Shown: positions 4,461 through 57,847 of the stretch, in pieces
Numbering within the stretch: the first letter of the stretch is position 1
Layout of the letters: every line of letters starts with the position of its first letter
NCBI GenBank assembly: GCA_004431415.1
Contig: QPMI01000638.1
Coordinates: 175,728 to 239,727 of the forward strand
Reading direction: 5' to 3'
Origin: Cyanophora paradoxa CCMP329
Taxonomy: Eukaryota > Plantae > Glaucophyta
Length of the DNA stretch: 64,000 bases
Notes under the pieces: model-generated
The model's database searches: none
Told to the model about the DNA's origin: nothing
Seen by the model: only the letters and a program-made list of their open reading frames with translations
Translations under genes and position numbers: made by a program

Positions 4461-4751
4461 TGGCCCGGCCCTTCATGGCGGCGAACGGCCGCAGCCCAGG
4501 GGAGCCCTCGCCGAGTCGGGCAAGGCCCGCTCGTGGCCCTTCGTGGCGGCGAACGGGCGAGCCTTCAGCTCCCGCAGTGCAGGCAAGGCCCGCTCGCTTG
4601 GCCTGGTAAAGCAATAGAAGACTTCGATTTCGACCCCTCGCTTTCAACTTCCGAGTTGCCTATGAGAGCCCATGGATTGCTCAGCGAACACTGCTAGTCC
4701 GAACAGCTACTGGTCTAGTCCAGATATCGCGTGTGTCGTATCTGAAATGCA
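4461..4751 (+). repeat. Dispersed repeat family A, copy 1 (ends ...gtcgtatctgaaatGCA)
   Basis: Near-identical to 9768-10098, 27471-27696 and 29973-30173. Confidence 0.9.
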
Positions 4752-4893
4752 ATCCGCCACAGTGCTAGCTATCCATGATCAAAAAACATTGAACCCTACA
4801 CCACCCCAGAAACCAAACAAATTCGCTTTTCAAGCTTGATTAAATATAAGTATTCTCTCACAGGGCGACTCTCACAGTACTGTAATTCAACTC

Positions 4894-6532
4894 TCATCGC
4901 CTGTATCGATCGCGAGAACGGGAGCGTGAGCGTGATCGCGCTCGACGATCCCTGTAGCGATCTGCGAAAAAATAGCAAGACACAATAAGCAGCAACATAA
5001 CGTGTTTATGTACGTAGAACACATACCTCTCCTATCCCGGTCATAGTCTCTTGATGGCGACCTCGACCGGCGCCTGTAACGATCATCATAGCGCGGACTG
5101 CGATCTCGGTCCCTTCGGGGCGACCTGCGGTCTCTGTGGCAAGTCAAGACCACGTTCCGCATGTGCCCGCGCAAGTTCAGATGCAACGTACCGATCCATT
5201 CCACGTTGAGGCAGCCGCGTGCCCATGTACACGCCCGGGGTTGGGGAGTGAGCTTTTTTGGTGACCTGTGACGTCAACGTTAGATGTGCAGTTTCAGGCG
5301 GGCAGCAAATTGGGCTAGATTTACCGAAAAGTCGACACGAATCGGCCTCCCATCAACTTCCTGCACATCAGGTTGGCTAAATTGACACTTGTTGCGCGGG
5401 AACAAGAGCACCTTGCCGTGGAGTTTTTCCTTTGCCTTAGCGGCATCCTCAACTGATTTGAAATACACGAAGCAAAACCCCTTCATCTTGTTCGTCTGCA
5501 GAAGCCGACATCATCTATCAGAGTCGGAAAACATAGGAACTAGGTCTGGCTATTTAAGAGTCGAGTTTGCTAGCCCAGAAAGCATCTAAAATAGCAGAAT
5601 ATCGTCCCGCGGCACAGCAAAGCGCGATGCATCGTGCCGACGCCCTGCTGTTTAAAGCGAGACAAAAATCTCGCATCGCATGTAAACTACATGTGGGCAT
5701 CGAAGCGGCCCAGTGTAGGGGTAGCGATGCGTTTGACGCAGTGTTTTGCCTTACTAGACGCAGGGGGCATTCATTAAAGGCGAGGGGATTTCTCGATCGA
5801 ACCTGGCGGTCATATATAAAGTGAATCGAATCGAACCCGTCGCAGGCCTCGCACATTCCGCGGACCAGCCCTTCATCTGTGGAAGGGGGAAGACCAAACA
5901 TCCCGAGGCATCGGTCTGGTTGCGGGGCCTCCCGCTGCGCAGGGATGCCCCCGCTTTGTTACCATTCGCGAACAAAACGCGGGCGAAAGGGAAATTTCGA
6001 CGGGGAAGTGCGATTATGCGTTTCCGCTCCGTGCAAAGAGGCAAGGGCACAAGCCGCCCGTGACTCGTTCGAAGAGCGTTCAATATGGCATCCGTGTAAT
6101 GCAGTGGAGGCAGAGAATGCCCCCGCCGATTCGAAAGATACGGATGCGCTGGCGCATCCCAGAGAAAGCACAAAAGCTCTCACCGCGAATCGACTAGGAG
6201 CGGCTGGCCGAAGAGGCGAGCGCCTGCAAATCGATGAGCTCGGGGAAGTAGAACGGTTTTGGACGTCGCTGCAAGCACACCGAGGGGATTTCGAACGACT
6301 TCGGCTCCGACGAATCCTCTTCGGGGACGGAGAGCGATCACGATCCCGCTCCCGCTTTCGGGTGGGCGACGCGTCGTGCCTGCGCGAACGTCGGCGCGGA
6401 AGGAGAATAACGCGAGGTGATCGAACCTGGACGACGCAGTCGCGTGCACGGGAGAGCGATCTCGGGACTGCGATGAATGACAATGAGATTCGAGATTTAG
6501 GTGGCGAGACACCCATCGCGCACGTCGCTCAT
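4894..6532 (-). CDS. TRA2: Transformer-2-like SR protein (RS-RRM-RS)
   Basis: N- and C-terminal RS tracts; RRM with KGFCFVYF and EVDGRPIRVDFS, followed by the TRA2 linker TKKAHSPTPGVYMG. Confidence 0.9.
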
Positions 6533-6789
6533 CGACAACCACGGCTCGGAAATGCTCAGGCTATCCGCAAGGGCAAAGCTGGATTGTGGTCTGGAACTTT
6601 TCTCGCCCTGCTGTCCCCTCGCAAGGCTGGATTGGGGTTTCAAGCTTTTCTCAATTATGTATTGTACCCCGCAAAATTTTGTAATGTACCCCTCTTCGTT
6701 GCCTGTACGTACCCCTGGACTCAAATGGGAAGTCCGACCCCAAGACTCGAGCCCGCGACGGCCCGGGCCGGCGCGGCGGAGCTTATAAT

Positions 6790-7145
6790 TCAATGATTAG
6801 GTCGGACGTCCTTGACTACGATTACCGTAGTACGATTAGCTAGGGGGTTGGGCGCCGGCGACCGAGCTCGAGCTTAGGTCGGATTTCGACGTCCAACACG
6901 TATGGTCCTTGTAGTGCAATTGATTATGATTACGATTCAATGATTAGGTATAGGGGGCTGGCCATGGGCGAACGTCCTTGATTACGAGTACGATAAGCTT
7001 TAAGGGGGTTGGGTGACGGAGCTTAGGTCAGACGTCTTTGATTACGATTACGATTAGGGGGTTGGGCGACTGAGCTTCGCAGAGTCGGTCGGACGTCCTT
7101 GATTACGTATACGATTACGATTAGCTAGCGCTATATAGGGGGTTA
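6790..7145 (+). repeat. Repeat module family E (ggacgtccttgattacgattag...ggggttgggcg), tandem degenerate units
   Basis: Similar gattacgat / ggacgtcctt units at 12218-12550, 25125-25270, 25885-25965, 34598-34640 and 51527-51610. Confidence 0.8.
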
Positions 7146-7430
7146 CGAGACGCGATGCCACACCCGCAGTGCACGCGGGTATACGTACATATAGTTTTAG
7201 CTAGCTAGAGTGTCCACGGCCGCGGGGAGGTGCATCACTCCCCTTTAGCTGAGCTATAGAGGGCCACGCGCGCAGGGCCCCGCACCGGCGCCAGCCTGGC
7301 AGGCCTGGTCGGCCAGTTGAAATTCGCTGGTGGGCTGGGCCCGCGGCCACAGCGGCCGCAGTGTACATTCCCACACGTGCACTTGTAGCCCGGACTTGTG
7401 GTTTGAATTCGTGTCCAAATGCTGTATGTA
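7145..7430 (+). repeat. Dispersed repeat family C (gacgcgatgc...gtgtacattcccacacttgtagcccggacttgtggtttgaattc)
   Basis: Matches 13065-13260; reverse copy at 25290-25390; degenerate copies at 3505-4200, 29165-29197 and 51483-51502. Confidence 0.85.
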
Positions 7431-8026
7431 CCCAGAACCCAAATCGAAGTCCGACCCCAAAGCTCGAGCCCAATTCATGCAAGTCCAAATCACCCCATGA
7501 TCAGCTGCAGGAGTGATCTGTCTCGAGCCCAAGCTGAAGTCCAAATCAAATTCCCAAAGATGCAGCTGGCCGCTAACGTACACAACGGCCGCTCTCTGCG
7601 ATTTCGATCTGCCATAAGACTTCGATCTGGATCTCGGAGGTATTGATATCGATCTGACCCGGCGACTGCCCACAGTTCCGCGACCCTCACAGATCGCGAC
7701 GGCCACAGTTCCAGCGCCACCCCTTTCACTGAGTCAGACGCAGTGTAATGCAGCTCCACCTTTTGCGCCCCGTGCGGGAACGGGAACGTTTCAACTGAAC
7801 GGAGTTTGCGTCACGCCCCGCCATTGTTAACTTCTTCCGCCAATGAAATTAGCCCAGCGCAAACTGAGCTCGAACTTGGCTCGTACACAGTGGCGTACAC
7901 ACCGGCCACAACGTCACAGTAACGGTCAGCAGGCCGGCTTGCTAGTCAGCTTCCTCGGCTAGGCCGACTAGCTAGCTTCCCGCCATCGCGCACGCCCGAG
8001 CGCGAGCATTCCTGCACGCCGCGTGC

Positions 8027-9389: not shown

Positions 9390-9767
9390 TGGAACCGAAC
9401 GCTGAGCCGACCTTGGCAGACAGCACAGAGAGCGGCATCTCGATCGCGAACGCTAAGCTATAAGCGCTTTTGCTTTTCCGCGCAAGTCCGTGGCTGGCCG
9501 CAATCTAGCTGCAGCTGGCCGTGCTTGGAAGGGGGGAGATGGCTTGGGGGGATATAGAATTTGGTCTAGCCAGCTCGAACTCGAACTCAGCCGGCTGATA
9601 GCCGCCGTGACACGGCCGTGTTCAAAATTCAATTCCATCCATTGTTAAAGCTCGCGAACTAGCGGGATGTCCAAAAGTCGCGCCGTTTTCGGCCGTCGAG
9701 GTCCGTCCGGGGCCGTCTGCGACATGCGAAACAGCTCCTTACGGAAGCTGTATTCCTTTCCTTTAGC

Positions 9768-10098
9768 GGCCCTCAGTGGCGGCTAACGGGCAAGCCCTCC
9801 GGCAAGGCCCGCATGCCTAGTCCAGTAGAGCAACAGAAAGGCTTAGATTTCGATTTCGACCCCTCGGTTTCGACTTCGATCTTGACGTCGAGTTGCCTAT
9901 TCGAGAGAGCCCGTGATCGCTGTGTGTGCATGTGTGTGTGTTCGATTTCGACCCCTCGGTTTGGACTTCGATCTTGACGTCGAGTTGCCTATCCGATGAT
10001 CTGAGAGAGCCCGTGGATCGCACAGCGAACACTGCTAGTCCGAACATGTACAGCTACTGGTCTAGTCCAGATATCGTGTGTGTCGTATCTTAAATGCA
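9768..10098 (+). repeat. Dispersed repeat family A, copy 2 (with internal duplication)
   Basis: Sequence identity to the other A copies. Confidence 0.9.
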
Positions 10099-10108: not shown

Positions 10109-11878
10109 TTATACACAGAGCAGCTGATCGAGAATGACATGAAGCGGAACTCCAGGGAAGGACACAGATTTGCCTCCATGAGTCTGCACATTCACCGGCG
10201 TCTTCTCTGACTGAAATTCCTTGGGTAGCTGCAAGAGAAATGGCAGGTCCGGTACTGTTGTTTCACAATCACTCCTTGCAGACAGATCTCCTGTTATGGA
10301 AGATCACATAAAGGGCGCGAACGGCACAGCACATTGATCAAAAAACAATCACCACTTTGTGGACTGCCAGGCAGAATTGCATCGATGTGCGCAATCAGAT
10401 CTTTATATGCCCCCAGAAGCGCCCCAGCAGACACATTCGCAAGTGATCCAGTCTCCTCTAAGCTTCGACTGGGGTTCTGCATTTGATGTGCAATGTGCCT
10501 GATTGTAACAGTGAGTGTACAGCAATCCCAAGAAAAAAACGCGCTCACACTACTGCCACGGATGTGACCATGGCACGATGAGAGCCACACAACTTCTTGG
10601 TGAAAACTTGTTCGGCTATATGAAGTGCAAGATTCTGGGTGTCCCTGTCCATTTGCAGCAGGTCACATGTTCGCTGCACAAGCGAAGCAAGGCTTGATGA
10701 CGACGTTGAAGGAACCGACTGGCTCCACAGTGTCAATGTTCTAAAGCACGGTGAGTCATGGTGTCACATCAATGCAGATTGGAAGTACCGGATGTGCTGA
10801 GCAATTTCTCGTTGAGCGATCCCAGACGCAAGCTGGATCTCTTGCATTCTGTTAGGTACTGTGCACACAATGCAGGCGGCTGCCAATGCCGGGATGTTCT
10901 TGTTGGCAAGAGACTTGTGTTTGGCAAAAGCACAGAACCTGCAGCCCGATATTGGGACGTCCTCTCTGCAAGGCGAGCCCAGAAAAGTTTTGCACTTACT
11001 GTTTGAAGGCTTCCTCAGCGACATTGGAGTCCAAGCCAACTTCGTCTCGAATGTCTTGGATCTGGACATACCCGTGAAGTATGCTGCAAAGATCAAACTA
11101 ACCGAATGCTCAGTTTAAACATGGCTTCAGCACAGAGGAGTGTGACATACTTCAGTGGACTTCATCTCGTTATGCCTTGCAGGCTGCTTGGAATGCAGCT
11201 GGCCGAAAGGCCGCATGGATTGCTCTTGCTTGATTGCAGGAGCTCCAAGCGAACCAAAAGCATCATCTTCGGAAAAAAACAGTCCAAGAAGACGCTCTAA
11301 ATCGGCCAGCTCTCCTGGGACAGTTCTAAGGCGAGTTCGTCTGGTCAGAAATTAATTCGTCAATGTCAAAGAATGCTTTCTGACCTCGACGTGGAGACAA
11401 ATGCACTGTCATTGTGAACACGCATTTGAGAGAATGCAGTGATGAACCCTTTTGAGAAGAATGGGTCATCCGGTATCTGTCAAAAAAATTTCGGAGTCGT
11501 CACAAGCGCCAAATCGAGCAGCACGTGCAGCTCACCTCCCCCTCGTCAAATTGAAAGAGATCTGAGAGATCGGTCGTGACGAGGCAGAGAGGTGAGTCGT
11601 GTTGCGACGTGACTTGCGTTGTCCTCAGATCGATGTAACGTTCCTCAAGGACCTGTTGACATTGCGCACACGAGATCGTGCTGGCGCCGCGGCTGGAAAA
11701 CCCGGAAGTCAGATGGGTGCCGTGTGTACTCGCAGCAAGATCAGATCGTAGGAAGTTAAAGAGCTTCGAAGAAGACGCGTATGTATACGAGCGCCCTCGT
11801 GGTCCAGTAAGACTCGAAGCGCGCTCACCTGAGGGATTCTGAAGAGCAAGCCGGACAAACGCGAGTGGATCCTTTCAT
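10109..11878 (-). CDS. PBRP1: Plant-type TFIIB-related protein (pBrp-like)
   Basis: Zn ribbon CPAC...CAQCQQVLEER, then pBrp-type motifs HDSPLCLVTTDL and DPFFSKGFITAFS, then cyclin-fold repeats (ALAAACIVC; AEQVFTKKLC). 3' end approximate. Confidence 0.8.
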
Positions 11879-11953: not shown

Positions 11954-12091
11954 CGCGGGTGGCGCCGGCGCTTCCGGCTAGCTTTGATTGCGAATGTAAG
12001 CAAGGTATCCTAGAATGGTCTCCGCGGGTGGCGCCGGCGCTTCCGGCTAGCTTTGATTGCGAATGTGAGCAAGGTATACTAGAATGGTCTC
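11954..12091 (+). repeat. 69-bp direct tandem duplication upstream of PBRP1
   Basis: cgcgggtggcgccggcgcttccggctagctttgattgcgaatg...tagaatggtctc occurs twice with 2 mismatches. Confidence 0.9.
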
Positions 12092-13064
12092 CGATTCGGA
12101 GCGCCCGTCTTAGCTCCCGTCACGGTTGGTGTCGTGCAGCGGAAAACGGGGCGTGCGAGCTTCGCAGATGCCGCTTAGATCCCGCGGGAAAGCGTCCGGA
12201 ATGGGTACAGGTACGCGACGTCTTAGCTTGATCTGCGCGGTTAACGTTAGGGCGTCCTTGATCTTCTGCGATTACGATCATAATAAGGACGTCTTAGCTT
12301 TGATCTGCGATTGCGATTACGATTAGGACGTCCTTGATCTGCGATTACGATCACGGGTTGGACGAAACTTGAAAGTTGGACGAAAGTCGGACGAAACTAC
12401 AATATACAATTGGAAGAAAGTTGGACGAAAGTTGGACGAAAATTGGACGCCTTTGTTTTAGAGATCTGCGATTACGTATACGATTACGAAGCTAATTATA
12501 TAAGGTTGGACGTCTTTGATTGCGCATGCGATTACGATTATTAGAGGTTGAACGGAAAGCTCCCCGAGGTTTTGCGATTTGCCCGAGGTAAGCAGCCAAG
12601 TAATAATTTTACTGAACGCCGTGTGACGCTCAGCGGCTGGCTACCGGTGCCCCGCCCCCCCGGCCGCACGGTGGGTGCGGCATCACCAGTGATATTACTG
12701 TGATTGGCCATGGAGTCATTATTCCAAGCCGCACTCTTCCAAGCTTTCGTCGATGGCCGAAGCCAATTTGCTGGTCGCCGCCTGCATCACCGCCTTCCCT
12801 GCATCAAGCGCGGCTGCCAGCTGCAGGGAGGACCACATGTGGACGAAAAAGACGAAAGTTGGACGAATTAAGTATCAATCGGTCGAAGTAGTAAAGTGTT
12901 CCGCTGAACGCTGAAGGCAACTTGTGACACATACCCCCCCCCCCCCCCCCCCTCCCGGGCCCTCCCCCCCCCCCCCCCCCCCCCCTCCCGGGCCCTCCCC
13001 CTTGAAGCCTGAAAAAGCCATTCCAAGCCTGACCCGCCACCACCCGGACACGGCCCCCGCCGCC

Positions 13065-13260
13065 ACAAGACGCGATGCCGCACTCGCCGTGCGGGCACAT
13101 GTAGCTCTAGCTAGCTAGAGTGTCCGTGGGGACACTGGCCACGCAGGGCCCGGTTGGTCAGTTCGCTGATGGGCTGGGCCCGCGGCCGCAGCGACCACAG
13201 TGTACATTCCCACACTTGTAGCCCGGACTTGTGGTTTGAATTCGTGCCCAAATGCTGAGT
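13065..13260 (+). repeat. Dispersed repeat family C copy
   Basis: Matches 7145-7430. Confidence 0.85.
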
Positions 13261-13284
13261 TTACGCCGAACACACTAGCTGGGC

Positions 13285-15318
13285 TCAACTTTCGTCAGAG
13301 TCCTCTGGAGGTGCAAGATCTGATGGAGACCCCTTTGTTGGCGTAATGAAGCACTCCGGGGGTATAGCATCCTGATGCCGCGGGGTCCAGTTGCAGGCAA
13401 AGAAGAGGTCTGGTCGAGCGTAGAAGTTGAGAGGCGGGCATGCAATGATTTTTCCAGCCTCGAAAATCACTGGGAGCCCCCGGCGAGCAAGGTGCGGAAG
13501 CCATCTGAATGCATGAAGAAAGGTGAGGGAGGAGCACGCAAGAAGTCTAAAATCTGCACTCGTACCTTAAGCCTTTGATCCACGGAATCTGTGCTTTGAC
13601 TGAAAGCCAGTCATTAGGGGACATTTGTCTTATGGTGAGGGGTCCACAGGAAACGGGTGTCTGGGTCTTGGCATGAGGAGAAATTCGAACGAGCCACCTT
13701 CACCAACCGTCAGCCCGTCTGATCTCTGCAGATGAGAGGCGGAAACTCACCTCCCATCCCAAAGCAGCGATTTCCCCAATGTGGTTGGTTCTTCTGCCGA
13801 ATCTCGTGGGTTTTCAGCGTTTGGCTGGTGCTCTTCACGAGTCACAAGGATCGCCTCCTTCACTTTAGTGAACGACTGGAGTTTGCAGCCCCCTGGAAGA
13901 TGTTTAGGAAGATGTTTAGGAAGGCACAACGACCTATGGACAACAGGAGCGCACCCAGGGTCGTTCCAGAATTGAGACCACCCTCATCACAAATCCTGTT
14001 CGAAAAATCACAAACAGAAGGCAGCAGCGGGGAAGCACCAACCTCTGCAACAATCTAGAGACCTGGTCTGTGTCAGGGGCGTATTGCATGCCTCCAATGT
14101 TCAAAAGAACTCGTGTCAGAACCCTCATTCCGACCTGCGATATTAGACAGCATGGTTACACTCAATTCCTTGAGAGCAGGTTGGGGGACTCACCGACTGG
14201 GGAAGATTGCGGAACTCTTCACCGGCATTGAAAAAAGCATACCCGTACTTCGGAAAGACACGACATGACGTCTTCAAGAATTCCGTGGCTTTTTCGTTCA
14301 GTGCGTCCCGGTGCAGCTGCATGTGGTGGGCAGTAGTTGCGAACTGCTGGACTACTGAGCTGCTCGCAAGCTGTACAGAAGACTCTCTTCCGAGTGAGTC
14401 GGCCAGTCCCCTCGAATCGATGGTAGACAACGTGTGTCGAACGCGAGCCCTGTAGAATGCCTGGTTGCCATTAGAGGGGTCTTCAATCCATTCCTGGCCT
14501 CCCTCAGAACAGACATTTTGCAGATCGCCCTGTACATAAACTTAGAATATAGAAGAGTGAAATCGGGGAGGAGGAAGATAGGGGTGCTGGCCTTCGTTTC
14601 ATCAAGGATGGGCCGGAGGAGCTTCACACTATCCGCAAGGCTTGTAACTGGTGACATGCACGCGAGCCCGTCCACCCCACTTGCACGTGAGAAACGAAGC
14701 ACGAGAGTCTCAGCCTACGGAGCAGGAGAGATGAGTCGTTCGCATGACGGCATCGCGGATACGGACCTGGTCCTCGATTTGGTGCCCCGTGAGAAGGAAG
14801 CGAATACGATTCGCGAGGCAAAAATCGCGAAGCATGTCGTATCGCTTTTCGCGGGCAGCTTTGAGCATTCGCGCGGTCGAAGGCGGTCCGCCTGGCCAGG
14901 AGACGGTGAGTGTGTCGTGAGGGATTCCTGCGCCGCGAAACGCAGCGTAAGCCACATAGCAACATCGACACGCATAACTTCGCTTTGCTTCACCTCGACT
15001 CCGCATCCAGTCGCGCACGCGCGCGGCCTCGGCCGAGCTCTCGGGCCGCAGGCCGTGATCCACGGTCACGGCGCGAATGCGTACGCGGTTCTCGCGCGCC
15101 CACTTGTGGGCCAGCAAGCAGAGGGCCATGCTATCCGATCCACCGGAAACCGCGACGGCTGCAGGATGCGTGAGCTGCGCTCGCAACCACCGGAGCAGGG
15201 ACGGCGAACCGACAACATGCCCCGGTTTAACGGCGCCAGCCGCAGTCAAATTGCGCGCGAGGGATGATCTTATGGCATCCGCAGATCGCCGAGCGGTGGT
15301 TCCAGCGCTTGCCTGCAT
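13285..15318 (-). CDS. tilS: tRNA(Ile)-lysidine synthase, probably organellar
   Basis: PP-loop AVAVSGGSDSMAL, VDHGLRPES, AREKRY, LLTGHQIEDQ|AETLVLRFSRASGVDGL, LLRPIL; N-terminus resembles a targeting peptide. 3' end approximate. Confidence 0.88.
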
Positions 15319-18700: not shown

Positions 18701-20352
18701 GCGCAGTGATGTGGATGCTGAAGCTGCCAGGTGCAAGGACGCATTGCATTGGTTTCGGTAAGTCTTGTAAAAGACACTGCCCGTGTTTTCTGACGCATAC
18801 CACAGTGAGCAAGAGTCCAGAAGGCGCCAGCTCGTACGTGCTTACATGCTGTCCCGACTTCGGGATGGCTCTCATTGCTCGCATTGCAGCTCGACTCTGG
18901 TGTGGTTCTTATTGCTTCAACGGCGGCGGCTGTGTTTCTACACAAGCTGATGGACTGTCAATCGGCTCATGCGGACCGTGTCCTTCATGATCTTCTCCAG
19001 GAGGAGGAGGCCCAGGCAAAGAGCGAGAAGAAAAAGGGCAAGAAGGCATCATCATCAGCGAAGCTGAAGAAGAATGCGGAAGTGGAACGGGAAAGCCCAG
19101 CAGTGAGTTCAGGCAAGGAGGAGCATGCCGTTCTGCCAGCACCAGTGCCCACACAGAAGCCTGCCAAGGCTGGCAAGATGGTGAAGCACAACCCCAAAGG
19201 GCCCGATGCAGGGAATGGCAATCCTGCACTTGTGCAGAGGTCGATTGAGAATCCGGCAAGCACTCCTTCAGCAGTCACCACTCGGCCAGGACAAACAAAA
19301 GCAGCTGCTGTGGCACCTTCAAGCTCTCAGGCAACTTTGCAGAAATCCGATCCTTGTGAAGACTCAGTGAGCACACCTGAACAGCCAAGGAGGAGCAACC
19401 GAGAAGCCCGCAATCTTCCAACAGTCTGCCACCCGTCGCAGCCTCGGCCTCCTGATCCATCACCTTCCACCCCCGAGCCCTCGACTCCACCTGCCAAAGC
19501 TACAGGTTCGTCGAAGAAGGCATCTCAGCACAAAGCAGATGCCTTCTTTGTCGAGAGGAGTCTGGCTGAAGAAGCTGTAGTAGCAACGGGGTCAGCAGTG
19601 AGCAGCATGGATGCTTCAGCAGGGGCCTGGTCTGATGAATCAGGCCGGTCAACACCATCTCCTCCTCGGCAACGTGCAGCCCACATGGGTGAGAGGGTAG
19701 ATGTGCAGCCGCAGTCTCAGCTTGAGGAGCTCCAGCAGAATTGGGCCAGTCTGAAGGTCAGCCACGGCAAGCTGCAGGCCGCCCAAAGTCGAGCGGAGGC
19801 AGATGCACGCCAAGCGAAGGAGGCGCTGGAAGTGGCTCTCGGTGAGCTGTCTCAACGAGACGCAGCTTTACAGGCGGCATACCAGCAAATTGCGGCCTTC
19901 CAGGTTCTCCTTGAGCAGCAGCAGCAGCAGCTAGAGGCATCGGAGAGAGGTCGAAGGGAGGCAGAGCGTAACGTTAGGCTTTTGGGTGGAGATCAAGAAC
20001 AGCTGCGTAGTCTCCGGTACAACGAGGTGAGTCCTGCAATGTTTGGCCGTCACAAAGCTAACTTGTCAGTAGCTGGAGTTCATTGAGGCGACCCTCAAGG
20101 CTGCGTTGGAGAGGACGATTGCAACCCGGATATGCGCAACACAATCTTGGAGCCTGCTGCGTTGTATGATCTGCAATGCCGCCGAGGTACGAGCACTGTG
20201 TGACACATGTCTCATGAGCTCATATGTGTGACCACGATTAGGCGACTCTTGTATTTGCCCCGTGCGGACACAAGGCTTGCCCCAACTGCGGATCACACTG
20301 CGAGGCTTGTGCTAATTGCGGATCACATGTAGAAAAACGTGATGTTCTATAG
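15741..20352 (+). CDS. Large protein with low-complexity and coiled-coil regions and a C-terminal C3HC4 RING; 5' end uncertain, could be two genes
   Basis: Last exons CMICNAAE|ATLVFAPCGHKACPNCGSHCEACANC...DVL*; long exon 18875-20026 with coiled coil; spliced exons upstream to about 16 kb. Confidence 0.6.
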
Positions 20353-21158
20353 CTTGTGAAACGGATCACATGAGGAAAAAACGCGACTAGGACGTCGCAG
20401 GTTTTTTTGCAGACGATTACGATTAGACCCTAACCCTAAACGTAAGACGGGGGTCGTCGGTTTGCCGCCGTGATCCGCTGGATTGTGGCTCAGGCGGGCC
20501 AGCACTGCTCTAGTATGCCCCTAAGGGCCCGGTGCATGCCGGCTCAAGCCTTTGAAGCTCGTGCGCGCCCAGCACCATGACGACCAGCACCATGGCGCGA
20601 CTCGGCGAGCTTGAGGCCACAAGCTGTGTGGCCCACTGGGGGCCAGTTAGCGAAGGGGACCACTTTACTGTCATGACTCTCATGACTCTCATGACTCTAG
20701 TGATTAGGCTCCGAGACTGATCATGATCATGAGTACTAGTGGAGCCAGCAAACCGTTGAACGTTAACGTTACGTTGAATGCACAAGCGCGCCACTTCCCC
20801 ACAATTGTAGCTAGCTATCGCCTTGCAATTGCAGGCCGGGCCTCTTGAGGCACATATGTACATTTATAATGCAATAAAGGACACACACGGAGCTGGTCCG
20901 GATCCCTTCATGTTCGCACATATATATATGGTGTTCACAAATATTGGATTTAAGTGCTAAGGATTCCGTGAGCCTTGGCGCGGCGAGATGGCATGCGTAA
21001 TTGTTGTGAAACGTGAATGATCTATCGATTTGGTGGCCATGTGAGCTCGAGGAAGTCGGCTTTGATTAGGATTTGGGACACAGGGCTGGACAAGCTGTGA
21101 ATAGCTAGAGATGCATGCGCAGGAAGGGAGCTCGCCCTCTCCGGGACGGGACTGGGTG

Positions 21159-24610: not shown

Positions 24611-24905
24611 ATGCATCACGTTGAGAGCGTCCGGCGGCTGTGCGGACGTAGGCTGCGCATGCAGCTCGCGGATTCTCGATCGTTCACGGGCCGGCTCCTG
24701 TGCTTCGATCAGGTAATACACGCGCGCGTCCCGCCATTGCAGCCCTCGTTGAGGGGGCTTGCAGCAAGGGAACATTCTTTTACGGGACACCGAGGAGGTG
24801 CGGGCAATCAGCGGCGGGCCAGCTTCGACAAGATTCGTTGGGCTGGCTGTCGTTCCTCTGAGAGCCGTCGTGCAGTGCGAGGCCCTCGTCTCCGCGGACT
24901 CGTAG
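24611..24905 (+). CDS. NAA38: Sm/LSm-domain protein, NatC auxiliary subunit-like
   Basis: LRMQLADSRSFTGRLLCFDQ|QGNILLRDTEE...RFVGLAVVP; one intron. Confidence 0.75.
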
Positions 24906-24909
24906 AAAT

Positions 24910-25125
24910 TGCGCTTTCTACGCTACGGGCGCGAGCCGGACCTCCTACCTCAGCGCTTTAACTATACCCGTGCTGTTAGGGATGAGAGCATAACCCGCAG
25001 GGACTGGTGCCCTGATGGAAAAAAGGGGATCGGAGCCTAGTTGGCTACGAGCCGAGCAGGCGCTTCGCGTCCACGCCCGTGCAGTAGCGGATGAGGCTGC
25101 TCCTGCGGGAGGTTTGTGCGATCAG
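24910..25125 (-). repeat. Dispersed repeat family D, copy 1 (end ...cccgtagcgtagaaagcGCA)
   Basis: Matches 25678-25881, 25960-26173 (inverted) and 42953-43110. Confidence 0.9.
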
Positions 25126-25524
25126 TACGATTATGACCACGATTAGGGGGCTACTAGGCTAGGAGGCGAGCTCTGGCCAACTGAAAAATTACGATTACGA
25201 TTATTAGGGGGCTGGGAGGCTAGCTCTGGATTACGATCAGGGGGCCAGGAGGCGAGCTCTGGCCAACTCCGCGGGCTCTTGGAAATCGAATTTTAAGCAT
25301 TTGGGCACGTACTAATTTCGCAAGTCCGTGCTACAAGTGTGGGATGTACACTGCGGCCACCGTGGCAGCGGGCCCAGCCCACCAGCAAGCGAGGGCCGCA
25401 CCTTCCTACGCGTAGCCCAGACAGGCGTAGTACACAGCTAGCTAGCTCTGTCTAACGCTGAACGCAATCATTATGGTTCAACACTGTGACAGGGCATTTC
25501 AAATTAAAAGAGTTTCCTACGCGC

Positions 25525-26326
25525 ATGCTTATTCATGATTTCGCTCCGAGGCTCCGTAGTTATAGTCATTTCCGACCTGTCTGGATAGATATCGGCGCAA
25601 GCTCAGGCCTAGGGTTGGCCCAGTTGCAAAACTTGAAAGATCTAGAGGCCCGTGCAGCGCGTTAAATATATACTAGTTGCTCTTTCTACGCTACGGGCGC
25701 GCCGGACCTCCTTCCTACAGCGCTTTAACTGTACCCGTGCTGTTAGGGATGAGAGCGTAACCCGCAGGGACTGGTGCCCTGATGGAAAAAAGGGGATCGG
25801 AGCCTAGCGCTAGCTATAGCTACGAGCCGAGCAGGCGCTTCGCGTCCACGCCGGTGCCGTAGCGGATGAAGATGCTCCTGCAAGAGTACGATTACGATTG
25901 CGATCGTAATCGCCGCCCGATCGCGATCGTAATCGTACTGATCGCGATCGTAATCGTACTGATCGCACAGACCTCTCGCAGGAGCATCTTCATCCGCTAC
26001 GGCACGGGCGTGGACGCGAAGCGCCTGCTCGGCTCGTAGCCAACTAGGCTCCGATCCCCTTTTTTCCATCAGGGCACCAGTCCCTGCGGGTTACGCTCTC
26101 ATCCCTAACAGCACGGGTACAGTTAAAGCGCTGTAGGAAGGAGGTCCGGCGCGCCCGTAGCGTAGAAAGAGCAACTAGTATATATTTAACGCGCTGTACG
26201 GGCCTCTAGATCTTTCAAGTTTTGCAACTGGGCCAACCCTAGGCCTGAGCTTGCGCCGATATCTATCCAGACAGGTCGGAAATGACTATAACTACGGAGC
26301 CTCGGAGCGAAATCATGAATAAGCAT
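25525..26326. repeat. About 800-bp inverted repeat with ~350-bp arms, each containing family D
   Basis: 25525-25881 is the near-perfect reverse complement of about 25979-26326. Confidence 0.95.
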
Positions 26327-26544
26327 ATTGCAAGATTTATTCCGGGCCATGGCCAGCTTGCTGCATGCAGCGCCGTCGCTGCAGTGTACGTATCGTACTA
26401 GTATACGCACGTGCGAACGTTAACGTAGCTTATAAAGCACACGCAACACGCATACATTGAAGTGTACCCGTCAACGGAACCCTCGGCGTCCGGGATCCGC
26501 TGCTGGCCGTACGTAAAGCACTTTCGACCTCAAACGCGCGTAGG

Positions 26545-27378: not shown

Positions 27379-27470
27379 GATCAAGGATCGGCAGTGGCGG
27401 CGGTGAAGCATTCTGGCCTGCTTGACAGCGTCATTAGACCGAGTTCCAAGCCAGTTCCATGCCAGACGAG

Positions 27471-29972: not shown

Positions 29973-31009
<1,037 letters not shown>

Positions 31010-34568: not shown

Positions 34569-35269
34569 CGCTAATCGGCCATCGATGTTCGACGGTTGCG
34601 ATTACGAGGTTGCGATTACGATTGGGGTACCGGTGCTTGCGGTCGATGTTGCGATTACGATGCGTTCAGCGATCGCACGTGAAAAAAGCATGCGTTCAGC
34701 GATCGCACGATGCGTACGATGTTGTTTCGTGAAAAAAATGCGATCGCAGCGATCAAATGTCGTACGTGCGTTCAGCGTAGACAGAGCTAGCTAGCTGTGT
34801 ACTACGCCTGTCTGGGCTACGCGTAATTAAATGTATAGCTATAGGGTTGCCATGGCCACTTACGACTTACGTATACAGAATTACGCTTGCTATAGGGTTG
34901 CCATGGCCACTTACGACCACTTAAAAGTAGCGTAAAAGAGATCACCGCTTGCATCCGGCCTGATCGCGTCGTCGTACACAACTCGTTGTCGAACTACGCG
35001 CTTTTTCCGCAGCGTCCGCCGCAGCAGACAAAATTAATTTACAGTGGGCGATGCACATTTACAGTGGGGCAATTCGGCTTCTAAATGCTCTAGTGTATGA
35101 TACAGCTGCTCGTGGCCATCAACATCCATTTCCTCATGCTCTGGCGTCGATGTCGATGCCAGAGCATGAAGAAAGTACAGAGGTCCAGGTAACACCACAT
35201 GAAGATTAAAATTCTCCCACCAATGACTGGACGCAAAATAAGGAATGCTTTTAAAGTCGTGTAAGAGAC

Positions 35270-36097
35270 TTACACATTCTGTGGAGAAGGCAAGAGATCA
35301 CCGCTTGCATCCGGCCTGATCGCGTCGTTGTACACGACTCGTCGTCGAACTACGCGCTTTTTCCGCAGCGTCCGCCGCAGCAGACGCTCTGCTTCAACCG
35401 CCTTCGCCTCTGGACTGCATTGTGGACACGGCACCATCTTGGCCCCTTCACACATTGTACACACTGGACGAACGTCAGCACGATCTCACAGACATCGATG
35501 CTGGCACTTACAGATACGCTCAAATCGCAGAGGAAACACCCCTCTTCCATCCGGTCCCCAGAGTGAGGCCCAGTTTGCCGCCTGATTCTTCAGTCCTCCC
35601 AGCGGTCTCCAGTCCCAGACGCGACCATCATCCAGACAGACGGCACACGCAACAAAACCAGCTCCTGAAATTTGGGGCGTAAGGCGGAGCATATACGACT
35701 GAACAAAATAGATTGACTCACCCTCACAGCAGGGGCACTGCGGCGGCGTTACAGGCGCCGGCGGCGTCGGGGGTGGTTCTTGAGCTTTCAGCTGTAACGA
35801 CGCCGCTGCGCCCGTGTCGCTCTGTTCAGCAACCACCCGAAGCGTCCGTGGCTTGAGTCCTCCTGACTGCAATGCGGGAACCATGCGCGCCGCCGGGACG
35901 GAGCTGGCTGAAAAATGCACAGAGTCTGATGGCCAGGCGGGCCGCGAAGAAGCGCTGATATTCTGGGGGCGTTTCGATGCTTGAGGGCGTGCTATCTCAG
36001 AGGCTGAACCGGGCGCCAGCGTCATCGGCGCGCAGCAGACGACGAAGCATGATGCCTGATATGTACGTCGCAGATCTAAATTTGAGCCCGCAGCCAT
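35270..36097 (-). CDS. DnaJ-like zinc-finger (CxxCxGxG) protein, probably plastid-targeted
   Basis: CPCCE|GAGFVACAVC...CTMCEGAKMVPCPQC after a Ser/Ala/Pro-rich transit-like N-terminus. Confidence 0.7.
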
Positions 36098-36353: not shown

Positions 36354-37346
<993 letters not shown>

Positions 37347-37558: not shown

Positions 37559-37682
37559 TGCGTTCAGCGTAGACAGAGCTAGCTAGCTGTGTACTACGCC
37601 TGTCTGGGCTACGCGTAGGAGGGTGCGGCCCTCGCCGTTGCCGGCCCGGCCGTTCCCCCCCGAGGCCCGTAAGGGGAGTAAA
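37559..37682 (-). repeat. Family B copy
   Basis: Reverse complement of the 33030-33167 part of family B. Confidence 0.9.
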
Positions 37683-38134
37683 GCGTCGCCCGGCCGCGGG
37701 GGCGGCCGCCGCCGTTTGCTGATGTCCTGCGCGCGCCCCGGTGCACGTGAGCCGTCTTAGGCAAAGGGCGAGGGTGGAACTGGGAAAACACCTTTTCGAT
37801 GCTGGACGGAATGTGACCGCGAAACCAGTCTTGATCATGACCTGCCTTATACTTGGTTCATAATGCAACGAGGAGTGGGGGGGGGGGGGGGGGGGGGAGG
37901 GGGGTGGGGGCCCGGGGGTATTGTACAGTGCCATTAGCTCTAGCCAGTGCAGCTGCTGCAGCTGAGCTCCACACTATGAGTCAATTTAAACTTGATCATG
38001 AGAAGAAGTGCACTGCGGCAGTGCACGCCGGCCGGCGCCGCGCGGTGAATCGCCTTTTAATTTACCCCCAGAAATTTAACAACACAGTACCCGCGCCGTG
38101 CCAGCCGAGCACGTTCTTCCAGCGTTTTCCAGCG

Positions 38135-42952: not shown

Positions 42953-43110
42953 TGCTCCTTCTAGGCTACGGGCGCACCAAACACTCCTAGCCATCAGCGC
43001 TTTAACTATACCCGTGCTGGTCGGGATCTGAGGGGAGGAGAGCCCTGTCTGGTGGAAGAGGGAGTTTATCTAGCTACGAGCTGAGCAGGCGCTTCGCGTC
43101 CACGCCCGTT
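42953..43110 (-). repeat. Family D, divergent copy
   Basis: Conserved ends (ctacgggcg; gagcaggcgcttcgcgtccacgcccgt) around a divergent middle. Confidence 0.8.
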
Positions 43111-50974: not shown

Positions 50975-51728
50975 CGTTGAAAACTAATACCGTACCCCCA
51001 CCGGCAGCACTGGCCATGGGCAGCCACTAGTACTAGCTGCGCCCGGCCGTTGAAGCTATATATACGGTCGGATTTTCATCCAGGGTCCGATTTTGATCTG
51101 CGGTCGGATTTTGCTCGGCCTTTCACAGATCAGGGGCAGACCATTCCCAGTAACCGGCCTCATGGGGAAACCGTGACCCGTAACCCCCGGCCCATGGCCG
51201 GCCCCCGTGTACGTAGATCACTGAGTCACAGATCATCGGATGCATATGCATGCGCAGCTAGCTAGCGCTAGCCGTCAGCGCACATTGAGTTAACTTTGCA
51301 ACTTGGCAATACTCCGTACTTTAAAATTTGCAATTGCCAGCAGCTAGCGCTAGCCGTCGGCTGGACTCTGTAAATAATTCTCGAATTCGAACCCCTCATA
51401 TGATCACTGAGTCAAACTTCAAAATCAATAACTCAAATCATGATCACGCTGGCACGTAGTTTTACAAGCAACCCCCATGATCACAGTCCGGGCTACGAAG
51501 TGGCGATTTCAAGGCATATCATTATTGTAATCGTAATCGTAACTGTAATCCCCTAGAAGCGCCAAAGCTTGAGCCATGCTAAGATGAGCCACGCTAATTG
51601 TAATCGTAACCGCAAAAGCAACGTACTGCTAGAGCTTGCATTTCAGATACGACTCACACGATGCAGCTAGATGTGCTAGCCGCTAGTGTATATCACGTGT
51701 CTACGCTGAACGCAGCGTGTATCTCCCT

Positions 51729-54700
51729 CTACATCTCAAAATCCAAATCAACATCCACCTCCACGAAGTCAAGATCGCACTCCTCGGCAGTGAGGACCTG
51801 CCCGAAACGCTGCTCGAGCAACTGAAGGAGATGTTAGTGCAGGCAATTCTCCTTCAATGGGAAGGCACCAACCTCGCTCATTTGCAGTGCGTCGTCCTCC
51901 TCGGTCTCCTCCACTGTCGTGCTAGCGCTGGCATGCACCGGGGCTTCCTGGGCTTCCTGGATTTTGATCTCAAGAGCCTGAATGCGAGCAGCCAGATCTG
52001 CAACCGCCTTCGTAGTCGCGAGAAGTTGCGAGGAGATCCGAGCATCGGAGGTCGAGGCCGTCTTCATTGCTGCTGTCGCCAAGTCGTTTGTTGTCTTTGA
52101 ATTGGCCTCCAGGTCTTCCAGACGGTCGGCAATGGAGTCCATTGCTGTGGCCTCCCCCTTCAAGCCAGCGAACTCGCTCCTCATCTGCTCAATAAGAGAA
52201 ACAATTCTGGTCAAGGTCTCCCTCATCTGAGACACAACAACAAATATCTCACAGTCTCCAGCGCGGATGCTGTCGCCGATGCAGAGCTCTGAACGGTCGT
52301 TGAGATTGCCTTCAGCTTGTCGGCATTGCTACAGCGGGAAAGTTGTTGGTGGAAGGGCAGTCCTCAAAAAAATTTCACGTGGCACTCACCTCGCGATCGC
52401 GATCTCCAGCGATTCATCCTTTGCAGAGAAGTTTTCCTCGGCAGAGAAGAATTTTGCAGAAAGATCCTTGAAGTCTTTCGTGAGAGCAGTGATAGATTCC
52501 TCGTGTGACTGAAGTCGCAGAATTAGGCACTGCCTGTTGCCAGAACAAAATCATCAAATGCCTGACCTCGTCTGCACTCTTCAGAGCAGCCATGTCTGCA
52601 ACCGCGCCATCGATCTTCAATTCAAGCGCACCGGACCGCATGCTCGCCTCCTCCTGTGTGGCTTCCAAGAGTGCGTTGATCGATTTGTCAGCATCAGAGA
52701 GAGCTGCATTACGTGAATACAGTTGTCAGCTCTTGTCTCCATTCGTGTGCTATAAGAACTTACTTGTAAGTGCTGCTCCGACTGAACTGAGCTGTTGGCC
52801 GATTTGAGCCTTGGATCCAGCGAAGTCGTCCTGCTGCTGATTGATTCGAGTCTCCAATTTCTCCAGACCATCCTGGAGCTCGGTGCGAATTGACGACCGC
52901 TCTGCAGCTGCTGCAGAAGATGCCTGCTGAAGCTCCTGGTCGCGGGCGTGCAGCGCCTCGGCAGAGCTCTTCGCGGCCTGAGAGATCGATGACAAGTCCT
53001 TCTGGAGCCCGGCAATCTGACCGTTGATGCCGCTCTTAACGCCATCCAGCGACTTCATTGCGTCGGTGCGGAAAGCGGACAGCGCGCCGTTGGTCAGGTC
53101 AATGCTGGTCTGGAGGGCGGCAGCCTTGTCCAAAATCTGAAATGAAGAGACGTCAGGCGACGCCAAGTCGCTACGCGGCGCATAAAATCACCGCATGGTC
53201 TGCTGCATCCAACTCTGCACGGGCCGATTCAACCTTCTGATCAGTCGCTTTGATGGCCTTGTCGAGAGTTTTGTCTGCGTGTGCGTAGCAGGATTTCAAC
53301 TATAATTAGAAAAGTGACAGATGGGACCAGGCCTATTCAACGCACCCGCTTCGGAGAGGGCTGAGAGAGCCTTCCCTACTTGCTCGAAGCGTTGGGCGTT
53401 CTCCGCCTGGGCAGACGCAAGACGAGTAGTTGCATCCTCTGCAATTTTATCGGCCTTGGTTGTGATGGTCAATGTCTCTGCGGCCAGTCGATTCTCGAGG
53501 CCTTTGATGATTGCATCGGTGCGGGCACTGTTGTTTGCAGCCTCAAGTTTGAGGGCCGCAATTTCGTCGTGCAAGTGCTCCGCCGTGGACGAGATTTGAG
53601 CGCCCACCCCCTCGAAAGCACGAGCGGCACTTGTACGGGATGCGTCGAGGTCGGTCGCGAGTTTCGTAGCCCCATCGCGCAGTTCTGCAATCCAGGTAAG
53701 GTGTTGTCGCTTAAAAAATAGGAAGGAAACAGTGCACCTGCCAACTGCTTCTCCACGACTGATGTGCGGCCGGTAAGATCGAGCTTCACTGTATCGATGG
53801 CGCGGGCCAGCACGTTATCCGCCGCATCCAAAGCTGCAACTTTCTCGTTGTGTGTCTGCTTAACGTCGTCGAGATCCTTCGTTATGACCTTCGTGACCTC
53901 ATCAAAACCACGAGCAGCCACGCTGAGCTGTTGCAAAACCTGGGCAAGGGGAGGATATATGTGAGTGACCTCTCTGCGGCTGCCAGCCACAGGAAGGAAG
54001 CTCGAGAGCGAAACACACTTCCGCCTTGCTGGTGTCAATGGCCTTCGCTGTTGGAAAAGAAATGTGAGAAGGGGAAAGAGAAAGCAACACCGACAAGAAT
54101 CCGAGTCCGCACCTAGGACTTCATCTGCAGCATCCAGGGATGTTTGCTTGTCCTCAAGCGCGGATTTCGTCGCTAGCATGCTAGTCTGCACATCCCCAAG
54201 CTGCTTGCTCAGTGCGCTGTGGGATTCAGAAAGCGCGCCACCAAGCTCGGCCTTGGTCTGCTTCAGAGCTGCATCGAGGGCTCCGTCCCGGGAACTGAGA
54301 TCCGTGAATTGAGCCGCGACATCGGCACGCGTGTCTAAGCGGCAGTTACGTCAACGGCTTCCTTTTAAAGTCGCACAAAAAGGCCTACGGTCAATGATCT
54401 CCCCAAGCGTCTTCCCTGTCTTAGCGATCGATTCGAGGAGGGCTTGATCAGCCGATTGAAGTTGTGCTGCGCAACAGATGTCGGAAAGCGCAGAGTGCGG
54501 TTCGGGAAGATTATGTGATGGCCGACGCGCTGCCGGCGTCCCCCGCACCGATGCTGGTGGCGTTGGCATCTGCCTTCGCTTCGATCTGGTTCGCCCGGGC
54601 GTTGAGCTGATCGCTGAGCGCGTGATTTGAGGTTCGGAGCTCAGAGGCGACAGTTTGGAGGTCCGACGCGCTCTTCTGCAGGCCGTTCGACAGCGAAAGG

Positions 54701-55301: not shown

Positions 55302-56773
55302 ATGCGCTCAGCGCCACCCGGCTCAAGCAATAGATTCCTGCACCTGTTGAACTCACACGGCCCGGCAGTACTGACGGCCAAGCTTGAGCTATACCGATCC
55401 AACGCAGAGGAACGGAAGGCGCTCGAGCAGCGCATCTGTACGATGCTTCGGCCTATCGAGCAGCAAGCGCCGCTTTACGCTGACAACATTGCAGTGCGCG
55501 AGCGCAGGAAAAAATCACAGGATATCATCTCGCGCAACATACAGCGCGCCGCAAGCCTGACTCGTGAACGCAAACTCGAGGGTCTTGCTGAAAGGGTTCA
55601 CACTTCCATTCCTCTCTTCATTCGTGCGCCAAGCGGGTAGAGCAGGCGGCATCGCGCTCAGCACGGCGGTGGAGCAGCGAGGGATCCTCGAATAGCGACC
55701 GTGGAGAGCAACTGGAGGAGCTGAACGCGCCCCCGTCGTTTCAGAGACCTCCGGGTCTTCGTCAAGATGTCTGGGTCTTGCGTTTGTGGCTCACCATCAT
55801 TGCCCTCGCGTCCAGAAGTGCGTAAAACGTCTATGTGGTTTAGCAAACCTAATTGCCATTTTTTTCTAGGTCACTTCTTCGAACAGTGCTTCATAGTGAG
55901 TCCGAAGGCTGCGAAATCTGCAACTCTGGTATATAAGCATGCACACAGGATCAGAAGATGCAGACGGCGGTATCAATCATCCAACGTGCCTACCGAAGTT
56001 CAGTTCATCGACAGCGAGCAAAATCGTTGCGCAAACGACTACATTTTCTGCTCCAGAACTTTCCAGGCAACCGTCACTATGCGCTCTATGTATGCACTGT
56101 GTTTTTCGTCGAAGAAGCTTCAAGCATTGCCTTGATTTGCGTTTTGCAGCGCTATTTCGGACTCTTCAAGACGGGGCTCCCGGACTTCTCAACTGAACAG
56201 AATCTTGTAGAATCGCTCTTTCTAGAACTTGCCCTCGACGAACGCCCACAATGTGCTGTCGAGGTTCTCCACTGTTTCTTGATTGCGTTTTCTAATGCCT
56301 AAATGGCCTCACCAGACATCCATAGAGGGAAAAGGCGTTTTTGCCCTCCTTTCAGACGGAGGAAAACGTGGAAGAAACTTCGAGGATTTGCTCAAACGGG
56401 ATCTCGTGAGTTGTTATTCCTTTTGAAATGCAAATAAAGCAGTATTCCAACCAAGCACAGGATCCGCCGGACTTGCAAACGGTTCTTGCTGGCTCATTGC
56501 TTCCAGCACCTGAGTTCGCATTTTAGCACCTGAGTTTCACGCTGATGGCAATCTTAATGTTGATTCGATTTGCTCAGGCCATGCAAAGCCGGACCATCAG
56601 GGGCTGGTGTCGCGGCCGGAAAAGCTGGCACAGCCCCATTACGGCACGTACAGCCTCCACCTGTTGCCGGTGCAGCAAAGAAGGTTGGTGTAGCAAAACT
56701 TCCCGTCTTCCCAAGCGAGAGAAGGAAGCACTCTATCGATTCCGACTCAGACTGTGACGTAGTTTTCGAATGA
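55302..56773 (+). CDS. Unknown protein with an IQ-like motif
   Basis: Spliced exons; AVSIIQRAYRSSVHR; ends DSDSDCDVVFE*. Confidence 0.6.
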
Positions 56774-56795
56774 GTCGTACAGGTAGCATGTAGCT

Positions 56796-57005
56796 TGCGT
56801 TCAGCGTAGACAGAGCTAGCTAGCTGTGTACTACGCCTGTCTGGGTTACACGTAGGGAGGTGCGGCCCTCGCCGTTGCCGGCCCAGCCGTTCCCCCCCGA
56901 GACCCGTAAGGGGAGTAACGCTCCACCCCAGCACAGCCTATGGCCGCGCACGTGTCGTGTGCAGCATCGCGTAGTCGTTCTTGGGCGGTGGGAGTTCCTG
57001 CAGGC
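56796..57005 (-). repeat. Family B copy (may extend to about 57340)
   Basis: Reverse complement of 32960-33167. Confidence 0.88.
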
Positions 57006-57343
57006 CCGGCGGGGCCGGGACCCGTCGGTAGCCTGCGCGCGGGGGGGCGGCGCACGCGCGGAAGGGGGTCAGATCGGAATTGAAGCGCCCTGAAATCGAA
57101 ATCGAAGGCACGCACTCGGGGAAAGCGCGAAAGCGTGATCCCTCCCTGGTCGATTCTGCAGGGCGGCGGAAGCGCGCAGAGGGGGGTCAGGCAGCGCACG
57201 CGAGATCGGACTTCGGGAGGCGGGGCGGGCACCCAGGGGTTCCAATCCACGCTCCGCAAGGGTAGATTGGCGGGCCTCCCAGTGCGAGTGCCTGCACGCG
57301 CGGGGTTGACCCGAGGGCATTCCAACGCGAGGGCATTCCAACG

Positions 57344-57847
57344 CGGCTGGACTCTGTAAATAATTCTCGAATTCGAACCCCTCATATGATCACTGAGTCA
57401 AACTTCAAAATCAATAACTCAAATCATGATCATGCTGGCACGTAGTTTTACAAGCAACCCCCATGATCACAGTCCGGGCTACGAAGTGGCGATTTCAAGG
57501 CATATCATTATTGTAATCGTAATCGTAACTGTAATCCCCTAGAAGCGCCAAAGCTTGAGCCATGCTAAGATGAGCCACGCTAATTGTAATCGTAACCGCA
57601 AAAGCAACGTACTGCTAGAGCTTGCATTTCAGATACGACTCACACGATGCAGCTAGATGTGCTAGCCGCTAGTGTATATCACGTGTCTACGCTGAACGCA
57701 GCGTGTATCTCCCTCTACATCTCAAAATCCAAATCAACATCCACCTCCACGAAGTCAAGATCGCACTCCTCGGCAGTGAGGACCTGCCCGAAACGCTGCT
57801 CGAGCAACTGAAGGAGATGTTAGTGCAGGCAATTCTCCTTCAATGGG
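57344..57847 (+). repeat. 504-bp direct duplicate of 51358-51861 abutting the telomere
   Basis: Direct match with one mismatch (gatcacgctg vs gatcatgctg). Confidence 0.97.

Follow-up and report, generated by a model that had tools for sequence, protein, structure and literature searches.

Why should short repeats that differ in their interiors share one fixed end, and why should that end lie just behind stop codons? The question is raised by the terminal 64 kb of a Cyanophora paradoxa chromosome (contig QPMI01000638.1; "the window" hereafter means this whole stretch of 64,000 nucleotides), where an initial annotation had described three unrelated repeat families, A, B and D, each keeping a GAA(N)GCA end that in 9 of about 16 copies points, antisense, at the stop codon of an adjacent gene. 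The C. paradoxa genome is compact, with intergenic distances that average 770 bp, numerous overlapping untranslated regions (UTRs) and 11.5% unclassified repeats (Price et al. 2019, PMC6704402), and the window is likewise gene-dense, with short introns, up to ~57.3 kb. We find that A, B and D, together with two further families that had been missed, E and F, are probably non-autonomous mobile elements anchored at one end, and that the anchored end piles up within 25 bp of stop codons.

The repeat families and their ends were delimited by self-BLAST and alignments within the window. Family A has five copies (the long ones 76-90% identical), family B seven (92-100%) and family D four (70-93%). 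A copies end in ...GAAATGCA (variant TAAATGCA at 10098), B copies in ...GAACGCA and D copies in GAAAG[C/A]GCA (variant GAAGGAGCA at 42953). Past the GCA, the flanks of A, B and D copies share no alignment. Contigs from public DNA and RNA runs, which are unstranded and carry one depth value each, part from the window at the same B and D ends when they derive from other loci (loose ends at 25454, 25677 and 25678), and thus the B and D end is precise outside the window too. The precision claimed for the GCA end is therefore confirmed. Across D and the B/F stretch, contig depths add up to tens to ~100 times the single-copy level; this is no copy number and is taken only to mean that both are multi-copy.

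Gene ends were taken from hand annotation of 22 genes in the window. Spliced RNA contigs back the last exons of NAA38, RPA12 and SIW14, and the Rab6 stop is backed by the EukProt model tig00021464_g21756, identical to the window's Rab6 exons. The stops of PBRP1, the IQ gene, TilS, TFB4, TRA2 and the coiled-coil gene follow from hand-read introns, and the distance for the IQ gene is 22, 41 or ~104 bp according to the frame chosen. With the inverted duplicate 25678/26173 counted once, and 57623/57700 left out as a copy of 51637/51714 within a 504-bp subtelomeric duplication, 15 independent GCA ends remain.

Six of these 15 lie no more than 25 bp from a stop codon that they face (NAA38 4 bp, SIW14 8, PBRP1 10, the coiled-coil gene 14, the IQ gene 22 and RPA12 23), where 0.30 would be expected under uniform intergenic placement and 0.76 under placement within the same spacer (P 2.6e-7 and 2.6e-6). 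Within 250 bp, nine face a stop, the additional distances being refined to 135 bp for TRA2, 196 bp for TFB4 and 212 bp for Rab6 (2.8-4.0 expected; P 4e-4 and 1.4e-3). Restricting the count to the three RNA-verified stops gives P values of 0.003-0.018. None of the copies in the window has its GCA end within 25 bp of a start codon, or its far end that close to a stop; two non-docked B ends face start codons, at 154 bp (TBC) and 198 bp (TFB4). Families E and F repeat the docking, with two of five ends within 25 bp of a stop (0.1 expected, P 0.003). Across all five families 12 ends face a stop within 250 bp. Since eight of the 12 occupy the 25 bp nearest to it (P 4e-6 under a uniform distribution), the pile-up is at the stop itself, more than a matter of 3' location. 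The antisense docking of the initial annotation thus stands.

A few bases behind the stop, the coding strand passes into the GCA end of the element, so that the mRNA reads stop, a few bases, TGC..., with the element as its 3' UTR. That several elements lie within 3' UTRs, as had been supposed, is borne out by RNA contigs. A spliced NAA38 contig extends 110 nt into D (24910-25146), SIW14 contigs extend into A (29950-30173), and the spliced contig of the plus-strand gene at 26545-27437, whose stop is 34 bp from the far end of the A copy at 27472-27696, covers nearly all of that copy. The SIW14 contigs have depths of 726 and 74 in two runs. Just past the far end of this A copy, RNA depth is down to 3-4 although the DNA there has its normal depth; the SIW14 message therefore most likely stops within A, a suggestive result given the unstranded contigs with a single depth each. 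For the idea that the elements are domesticated 3'-processing cassettes, this drop in coverage is the only sign; neither AATAAA nor TGTAA poly(A) signals were found on the gene-sense strand of the elements.

Splicing was considered as another role. The A copies at 4430-4462, 9735-9766 and 29950-29972 start, when read towards the GCA, with a pyrimidine tract that closes in TTAG before GC hairpins, resembling a splice acceptor; no RNA joint occurs at 29972 in the RNA contigs. A similar role for TTTCAG or TTCAG inside the A and B ends was rejected: no RNA joint is found there at NAA38, RPA12 or SIW14, and D lacks the motif.

Table 1. Copies of families A, B, D, E and F in the window, with strand and relation to genes. 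The anchored end is the last position of plus-strand copies and the first position of minus-strand copies.
Feature	Positions	Strand	Relation to genes and remarks
A, 68-bp duplication of far hairpin unit	4430-4751	+	GCA end 135 bp from TRA2 stop (4887-4889, -)
F, ends GAACCCA	7323-7441	+	Faces no stop
A, internal duplication	9735-10098	+	GCA end 10 bp from PBRP1 stop (10109-10111, -)
F, B-like terminus GAACACA	13162-13274	+	10 bp from TilS stop (13285-13287, -)
E, 180 bp, ends CACA	20227-20405	-	9 bp from stop 20215-20217 (+)
D	24910-25146	-	GCA end 4 bp from NAA38 stop (24903-24905, +)
B, 79 nt	25389-25466	+	Back to back with inverted F copy; faces no stop
D, two copies back to back	25678-26173	.	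Within local inverted duplication
A, whole spacer between convergent genes	27472-27696	+	GCA end 23 bp from RPA12 stop (27720-27722, -)
A	29950-30173	+	GCA end 8 bp from SIW14 stop (30182-30184, -)
B, terminal stub, 19 nt	31073-31091	+	Divergent SIW14/TBC promoter, 154 bp from TBC start
E, 98% identical to 20227-20405	32639-32818	-	88 bp from TBC stop (32548-32550, +)
B, ~205 nt	32965-33167	+	GCA end 196 bp from TFB4 stop (33364-33366, -)
B, 59 nt	34767-34825	-	198 bp upstream of TFB4 start
B, 127 nt	37559-37684	-	GCA end 212 bp from Rab6 stop (37344-37346, +)
D, diverged (~72%)	42953-43109	-	Both end blocks kept; nearest facing stop 639 bp from GCA end
A, terminal stub, 26 nt	51637-51662	-	Joined to B variant at TCACA(C)GAT overlap
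B variant, ~60 nt	51655-51714	+	GCA end 14 bp from coiled-coil gene stop (51729-51731, -)
B, at least 205 nt	56796-56999	-	GCA end 22 bp from IQ gene stop (56771-56773, +)
Copy of A/B pair 51637-51714	57623-57700	.	In subtelomeric duplication 57344-57847; not an independent insertion

How far do these families belong together? The termini of A and B are homologous over their last ~17-18 nt; about 1% of random GCA-ending 18-mers score equally, a figure inflated by the copies themselves. The F terminus matches that of B (0.3% of random ends score equally). A subterminal stem stops 7 nt before the terminus in A and B and 6 nt before it in F, and a contig present in both DNA runs joins a B interior to an A end (joint 25439-27660). 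D has only GAA..GCA in common with A or B, with no significant similarity beyond that. The families are thus unrelated in their interiors, as had been claimed, but A, B and F share a terminal motif, and the D end stands apart. The proposal of a single common machinery is not borne out by the D end. An 8-mer, TCTACGCT/AGCGTAGA, recurs in D (24910) and B (37559) at positions 8-15 from the end, in opposite orientation.

The far end, described as variably truncated, is so in B, where lengths are graded from one fixed end (19, 59, ~60, 79, 127 and 205+ nt). By contrast, three of the four long A copies run through GC hairpins to a shared purine-rich far motif; the D copy at 42953 (~72% identical) retains both end blocks around an altered interior. 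A 7-bp repeat, ACGGGCG/CGCCCGT, flanks the conserved core of D; no inverted repeat joins the ends of A or B. GC-rich sequence runs on from the B copy at 56796 to the duplication junction at 57343. Triplet-flipped-triplet insertions occur within A and D copies (10044, 25806-25822). A degenerate satellite rich in GATTAC/TACGAT, often with TTAGGG-like words, occupies spacers (6790-7140, 12210-12560, 25120-25250, 32840-32880 and 51520-51600) and adjoins the far ends of D and E, and two CCCTAA units follow E at ~20428.

Back-to-back inverted partners were found at 51637-51714, 25296-25466 and 25678-26173. At the first of these the A stub meets the B variant through an 8-9-nt overlap, and the interior of the variant matches a loose end from another locus. 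Such partners resemble twin priming, and they could also arise by deletion between neighbours.

What kind of mobility would leave such copies? We tentatively favour, at somewhat below even chances, tail-less retroposons primed from the 3'-OH of the coding strand near gene ends. The element RNA would end in GCA; a borrowed reverse transcriptase would recognise its last ~17 nt and the stem ending 7 nt from the end, and synthesis would start at the exact RNA end from a free coding-strand 3'-OH. The lack of a target duplication would follow, we propose, because this 3'-OH belongs to a nick or broken end. Early stops would yield the 19-205-nt B copies and the back-to-back inverted pairs joined at microhomology. 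It is this B series down to 19 nt, together with the inverted partners joined at microhomology, that favours retroposition. Also in keeping with it are the precision of the end at several loci, the docking statistics and their recurrence in E and F, the terminal motif and stems common to A, B and F, and the RNA contigs within the elements. The polarity of docking does not bear on the choice, since target-primed reverse transcription and transfer by HUH enzymes both use a coding-strand 3'-OH as acceptor.

The pile-up below 25 bp would reflect a preference for DNA past coding regions, offered perhaps by open chromatin or an R-loop at gene ends, and may be sharpened by the survival of copies beside coding sequence. 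We give about equal probability to an active preference of this kind and to filtering by survival alone. The junctions point weakly to a site of nicking or breakage: in 7 of 16 a TAG occurs no more than 7 nt away (background 6.7%, a post hoc choice of motif), and in 5 of 15 a palindrome ends at the junction (P 0.07). A route in which cDNA recombines after a template jump onto ribosome-protected mRNA ends was rejected because the docked genes retain their last introns (the last exon of RPA12 is 25 bp).

Several observations weigh against retroposition. As the initial annotation had noted, neither a poly(A) tail nor a target-site duplication (TSD) is evident. No direct repeat above chance size was found within 2.5 kb, the 95-100% identical B copies included, nor any poly(A) or tandem-repeat tail, with one or two A at most after the GCA. 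The element cores hold no pol III B box, and the elements no hammerhead core and no Rfam match. Their A/B/F stems are energetically ordinary (z between -2 and +1.5). Neither DNA run contains a joint that skips an element and would mark an empty site, and no autonomous partner was seen, the window holding no gene for a Penelope-like element (PLE) reverse transcriptase with GIY-YIG. Moreover, A and D keep a conserved second end and in this resemble two-ended DNA elements.

Among retroelements, Chlamys PLEs of Chlamydomonas (MRC1, Chlamys-N4) are alike in leaving very short, 5'-truncated copies without a poly(A) tail (median insert 128 bp; PMC9977147), in between-family similarity limited to the 3' end and in an inverted partner at the truncated end, a hallmark of PLEs (PMC8557442). 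Naiad and Chlamys may also be without canonical hammerheads (PMC8557442). However, Chlamys elements target (C)n microsatellites in introns, form tandems with pseudo-long terminal repeats (pLTRs) and usually have TSDs (PMC8557442, PMC9977147), whereas the Cyanophora elements lie behind stops, with no microsatellite target or TSD and no GIY-YIG/RT partner found; the one possible sign of a pLTR tandem is two 11-nt B-like starts at 34661 and 34691, which precede the B copy at 34767. Reverse-telomere repeats near the 3' end were not found in the elements.

Stringent pairs of short and long interspersed elements (SINEs and LINEs; for example the partners of L2, CR1 or RTE) share a 3' stem-loop motif and have unrelated interiors. 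The A, B and F families are built in the same way, with a shared terminal motif and stem, but they have no repeat or A tail, no tRNA-derived head and no TSD. The precise 3' end with 5' truncation of SINEs and LINEs is seen in B, with A and D only partly truncated. ARAGORN found no tRNA match, and no tRNA, 5S or 7SL head was recognised. As structured RNAs, the elements were rejected (z -2 to +1.5, little covariation).

The absence of a tail and of TSDs, and a stem whose spacing from the precise end is fixed, would also suit a non-autonomous rolling-circle element of the Helitron2 kind, mobilised by an HUH enzyme. Its Rep protein would nick the stem-bearing end; at gene ends the single-stranded element DNA would join a 3'-OH of the displaced coding strand, with one-ended transposition leaving the far end variable. 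We consider this rather unlikely, though close behind retroposition in probability. The conserved ends with variable interiors and the B/A chimera speak for it, as does the 7-bp repeat around the D core, and the GATTAC-type arrays by the far ends recall satellite-carrying Helentrons. There is precedent in the one-ended, 5'-truncated CRe-1/2/3 families, which share only short 3' ends (PMC3627910); in these Helitron2 elements and in HLE2 (PMC11417382) one end with a subterminal stem is intact, the other is truncated, a short end is common to families and a tail is lacking. However, CRe elements insert after TTTT and their truncated copies bear 7-19-bp TSDs, neither of which is seen in the Cyanophora elements. 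HLE2 inserts at T|T, whereas a T stands before the TG end at just 8 of 15 junctions (P 0.01, itself a weak hint), and its asymmetric terminal inverted repeats (TIRs) span 8-18 nt; the repeat of D, at 7 bp, is shorter than the published 8-15 or 11-18 nt (PMC3627910, PMC11417382), and A and B lack one, their stems lying 7 nt from the end. The signs of HLE1 are also lacking: the elements show no 5'-TC start, hairpin-CTRR end or A|T target, their ends being TGC/GCA with a variable flanking base. A bias to gene ends is not described for HLE2 or CRe.

The conserved second ends of A and D, and four outward-facing pairs within single spacers (D24910-B25466, A51637-B51714, D25678-D26173 and E32639-B33167), open another route, which we regard as improbable. 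Here A, B, D and E would be alternative ends of two-ended TG...CA DNA elements that insert at random and whose exposed side is eroded by deletion turnover; ends beside coding sequence would be shielded, or ratcheted to the stop by end-mediated deletions, and kept if they make a usable 3' UTR. The A and B ends resemble an imperfect TIR, excision-type scars abound in the intergenic DNA, the SIW14 transcript most likely ends in A, and the two ends at 154 and 198 bp from start codons plausibly mark a promoter boundary. However, no consistent TSD surrounds any pair, and no perfect TIR was found, as the initial annotation had reported, so that the pairs do not qualify as MITEs (miniature inverted-repeat transposable elements) or other TIR transposons. 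Copies distant from genes, too, have kept their GCA end while the opposite end is gone. Random deletions would be expected to cut into GCA ends frequently, yet every tightly docked copy has one, and young B copies are docked already at 14 and 22 bp.

The missing TSDs could also be explained if the copies were terminal fragments of a larger element, either split-repeat units of tyrosine recombinase (YR) elements such as Ngaro and DIRS, which make no TSD, or right ends of Fanzor elements (the omegaRNA region), which leave tail-end copies. SIRE of Trypanosoma cruzi, derived from the YR element VIPER, is located in 3' UTRs. We think this origin very improbable: no copy has a short repeat at both ends, the stable fold expected of an omegaRNA is absent, no coding remnant adjoins the copies (the B extension was checked), and graded lengths down to 19 nt fit solo repeat units poorly. 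DIRS, Ngaro and Crypton elements would carry one and the same short motif at each end, with precise borders on either side, and Replitrons short direct repeats at both termini; the copies have neither. Replitron proteins are not reported from glaucophytes (PMC10288648). Because at least one defining test failed for each of SINE, PLE, Helitron1, Helitron2, MITE, Replitron and YR elements, we assign the families to no class. Scans of metagenomes gave no match to the B end and, for the D end, five GC-rich, bacterial-like matches with no further D homology; six viral matches were 17-mer chance matches. Protein searches with the NAA38 open reading frame (ORF) and the last exon of the IQ gene gave no match and were uninformative.

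The window has further features of its own. At its telomeric end, 57344-57847 is 99.8% identical to 51358-51861 (the tail of the coiled-coil gene), is cut at a TGGG seed and is capped by TTAGGG repeats, and a 16-bp tandem repeat (57312-57345) lies at the duplication junction; the chromosome end looks recently healed. The local inverted duplication has arms at 25525-25886 and 25973-26326 (~360 bp, 153 bp of it unique flank, with 283 bp fully identical), is centred on a GATTAC-type palindromic array and reads GAATAAGCA at its outer edge. Both arm variants occur in public runs, T and C at 26197, and an assembly artefact was therefore rejected. Upstream of EF2, 2200-3297 holds a reading frame that looks broken and contains tandem repeats of 12 bp (AAEA) and 21 bp (EREAKQQ); it may be a pseudogene. 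A 94-bp direct repeat (34936-35029 and 35292-35385) is 97% identical over copies 356 bp apart, a 69-bp tandem duplication lies at 11954-12093, and paired poly-C/poly-G tracts with CCCGGG occur at 12931-13001 and 37870-37921. In Rab6 (36480-37028), three consecutive introns are in frame and stop-free, so that one ORF reads through.

Short elements in 3' UTRs are known elsewhere. Leishmania SIDER1/2 (PMC2689281) and T. cruzi SIRE are short, non-coding retroposon remnants with an orientation bias that form part of mRNAs. SIDERs, however, are extinct, sense-oriented and anchored by a 5' signature in polycistronic genomes, with no pile-up below 25 bp of the stop, whereas family B is young, its copies being near-identical.

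Known targeted elements go for promoters, tRNA, rRNA or snRNA genes, telomeres or microsatellites. Bacterial REP/BIME sequences, which are moved by RAYT HUH transposases, often lie ~15-25 nt from stops and form mRNA 3' ends; they are 20-40-nt palindromes, and have no sequence relation or demonstrated mechanistic relation to the Cyanophora elements. Our literature searches, of incomplete coverage, returned no eukaryotic element piled up within 25 bp of stops and none aimed just behind them. The one-ended, tail-less anatomy thus has precedents; for the multi-family pile-up at stop codons, no precedent was found.

In its broadest form, the proposal is that a Cyanophora machinery puts several tail-less families into the coding strand within ~25 bp behind the stops of housekeeping genes, replacing many 3' UTRs and supplying mRNA ends (eight of ~21 gene ends in the window at up to 25 bp, 12 at up to 215 bp); at this scope we regard it as doubtful. 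The families account for some of the 11.5% unclassified repeats of the genome (PMC6704402). If the docking is true targeting, it would be a new safe-harbour strategy and would imply a molecular mark of coding-region ends at the level of DNA. If it is filtering, the 3' UTRs of a compact eukaryotic genome would still be rebuilt from mobile DNA.

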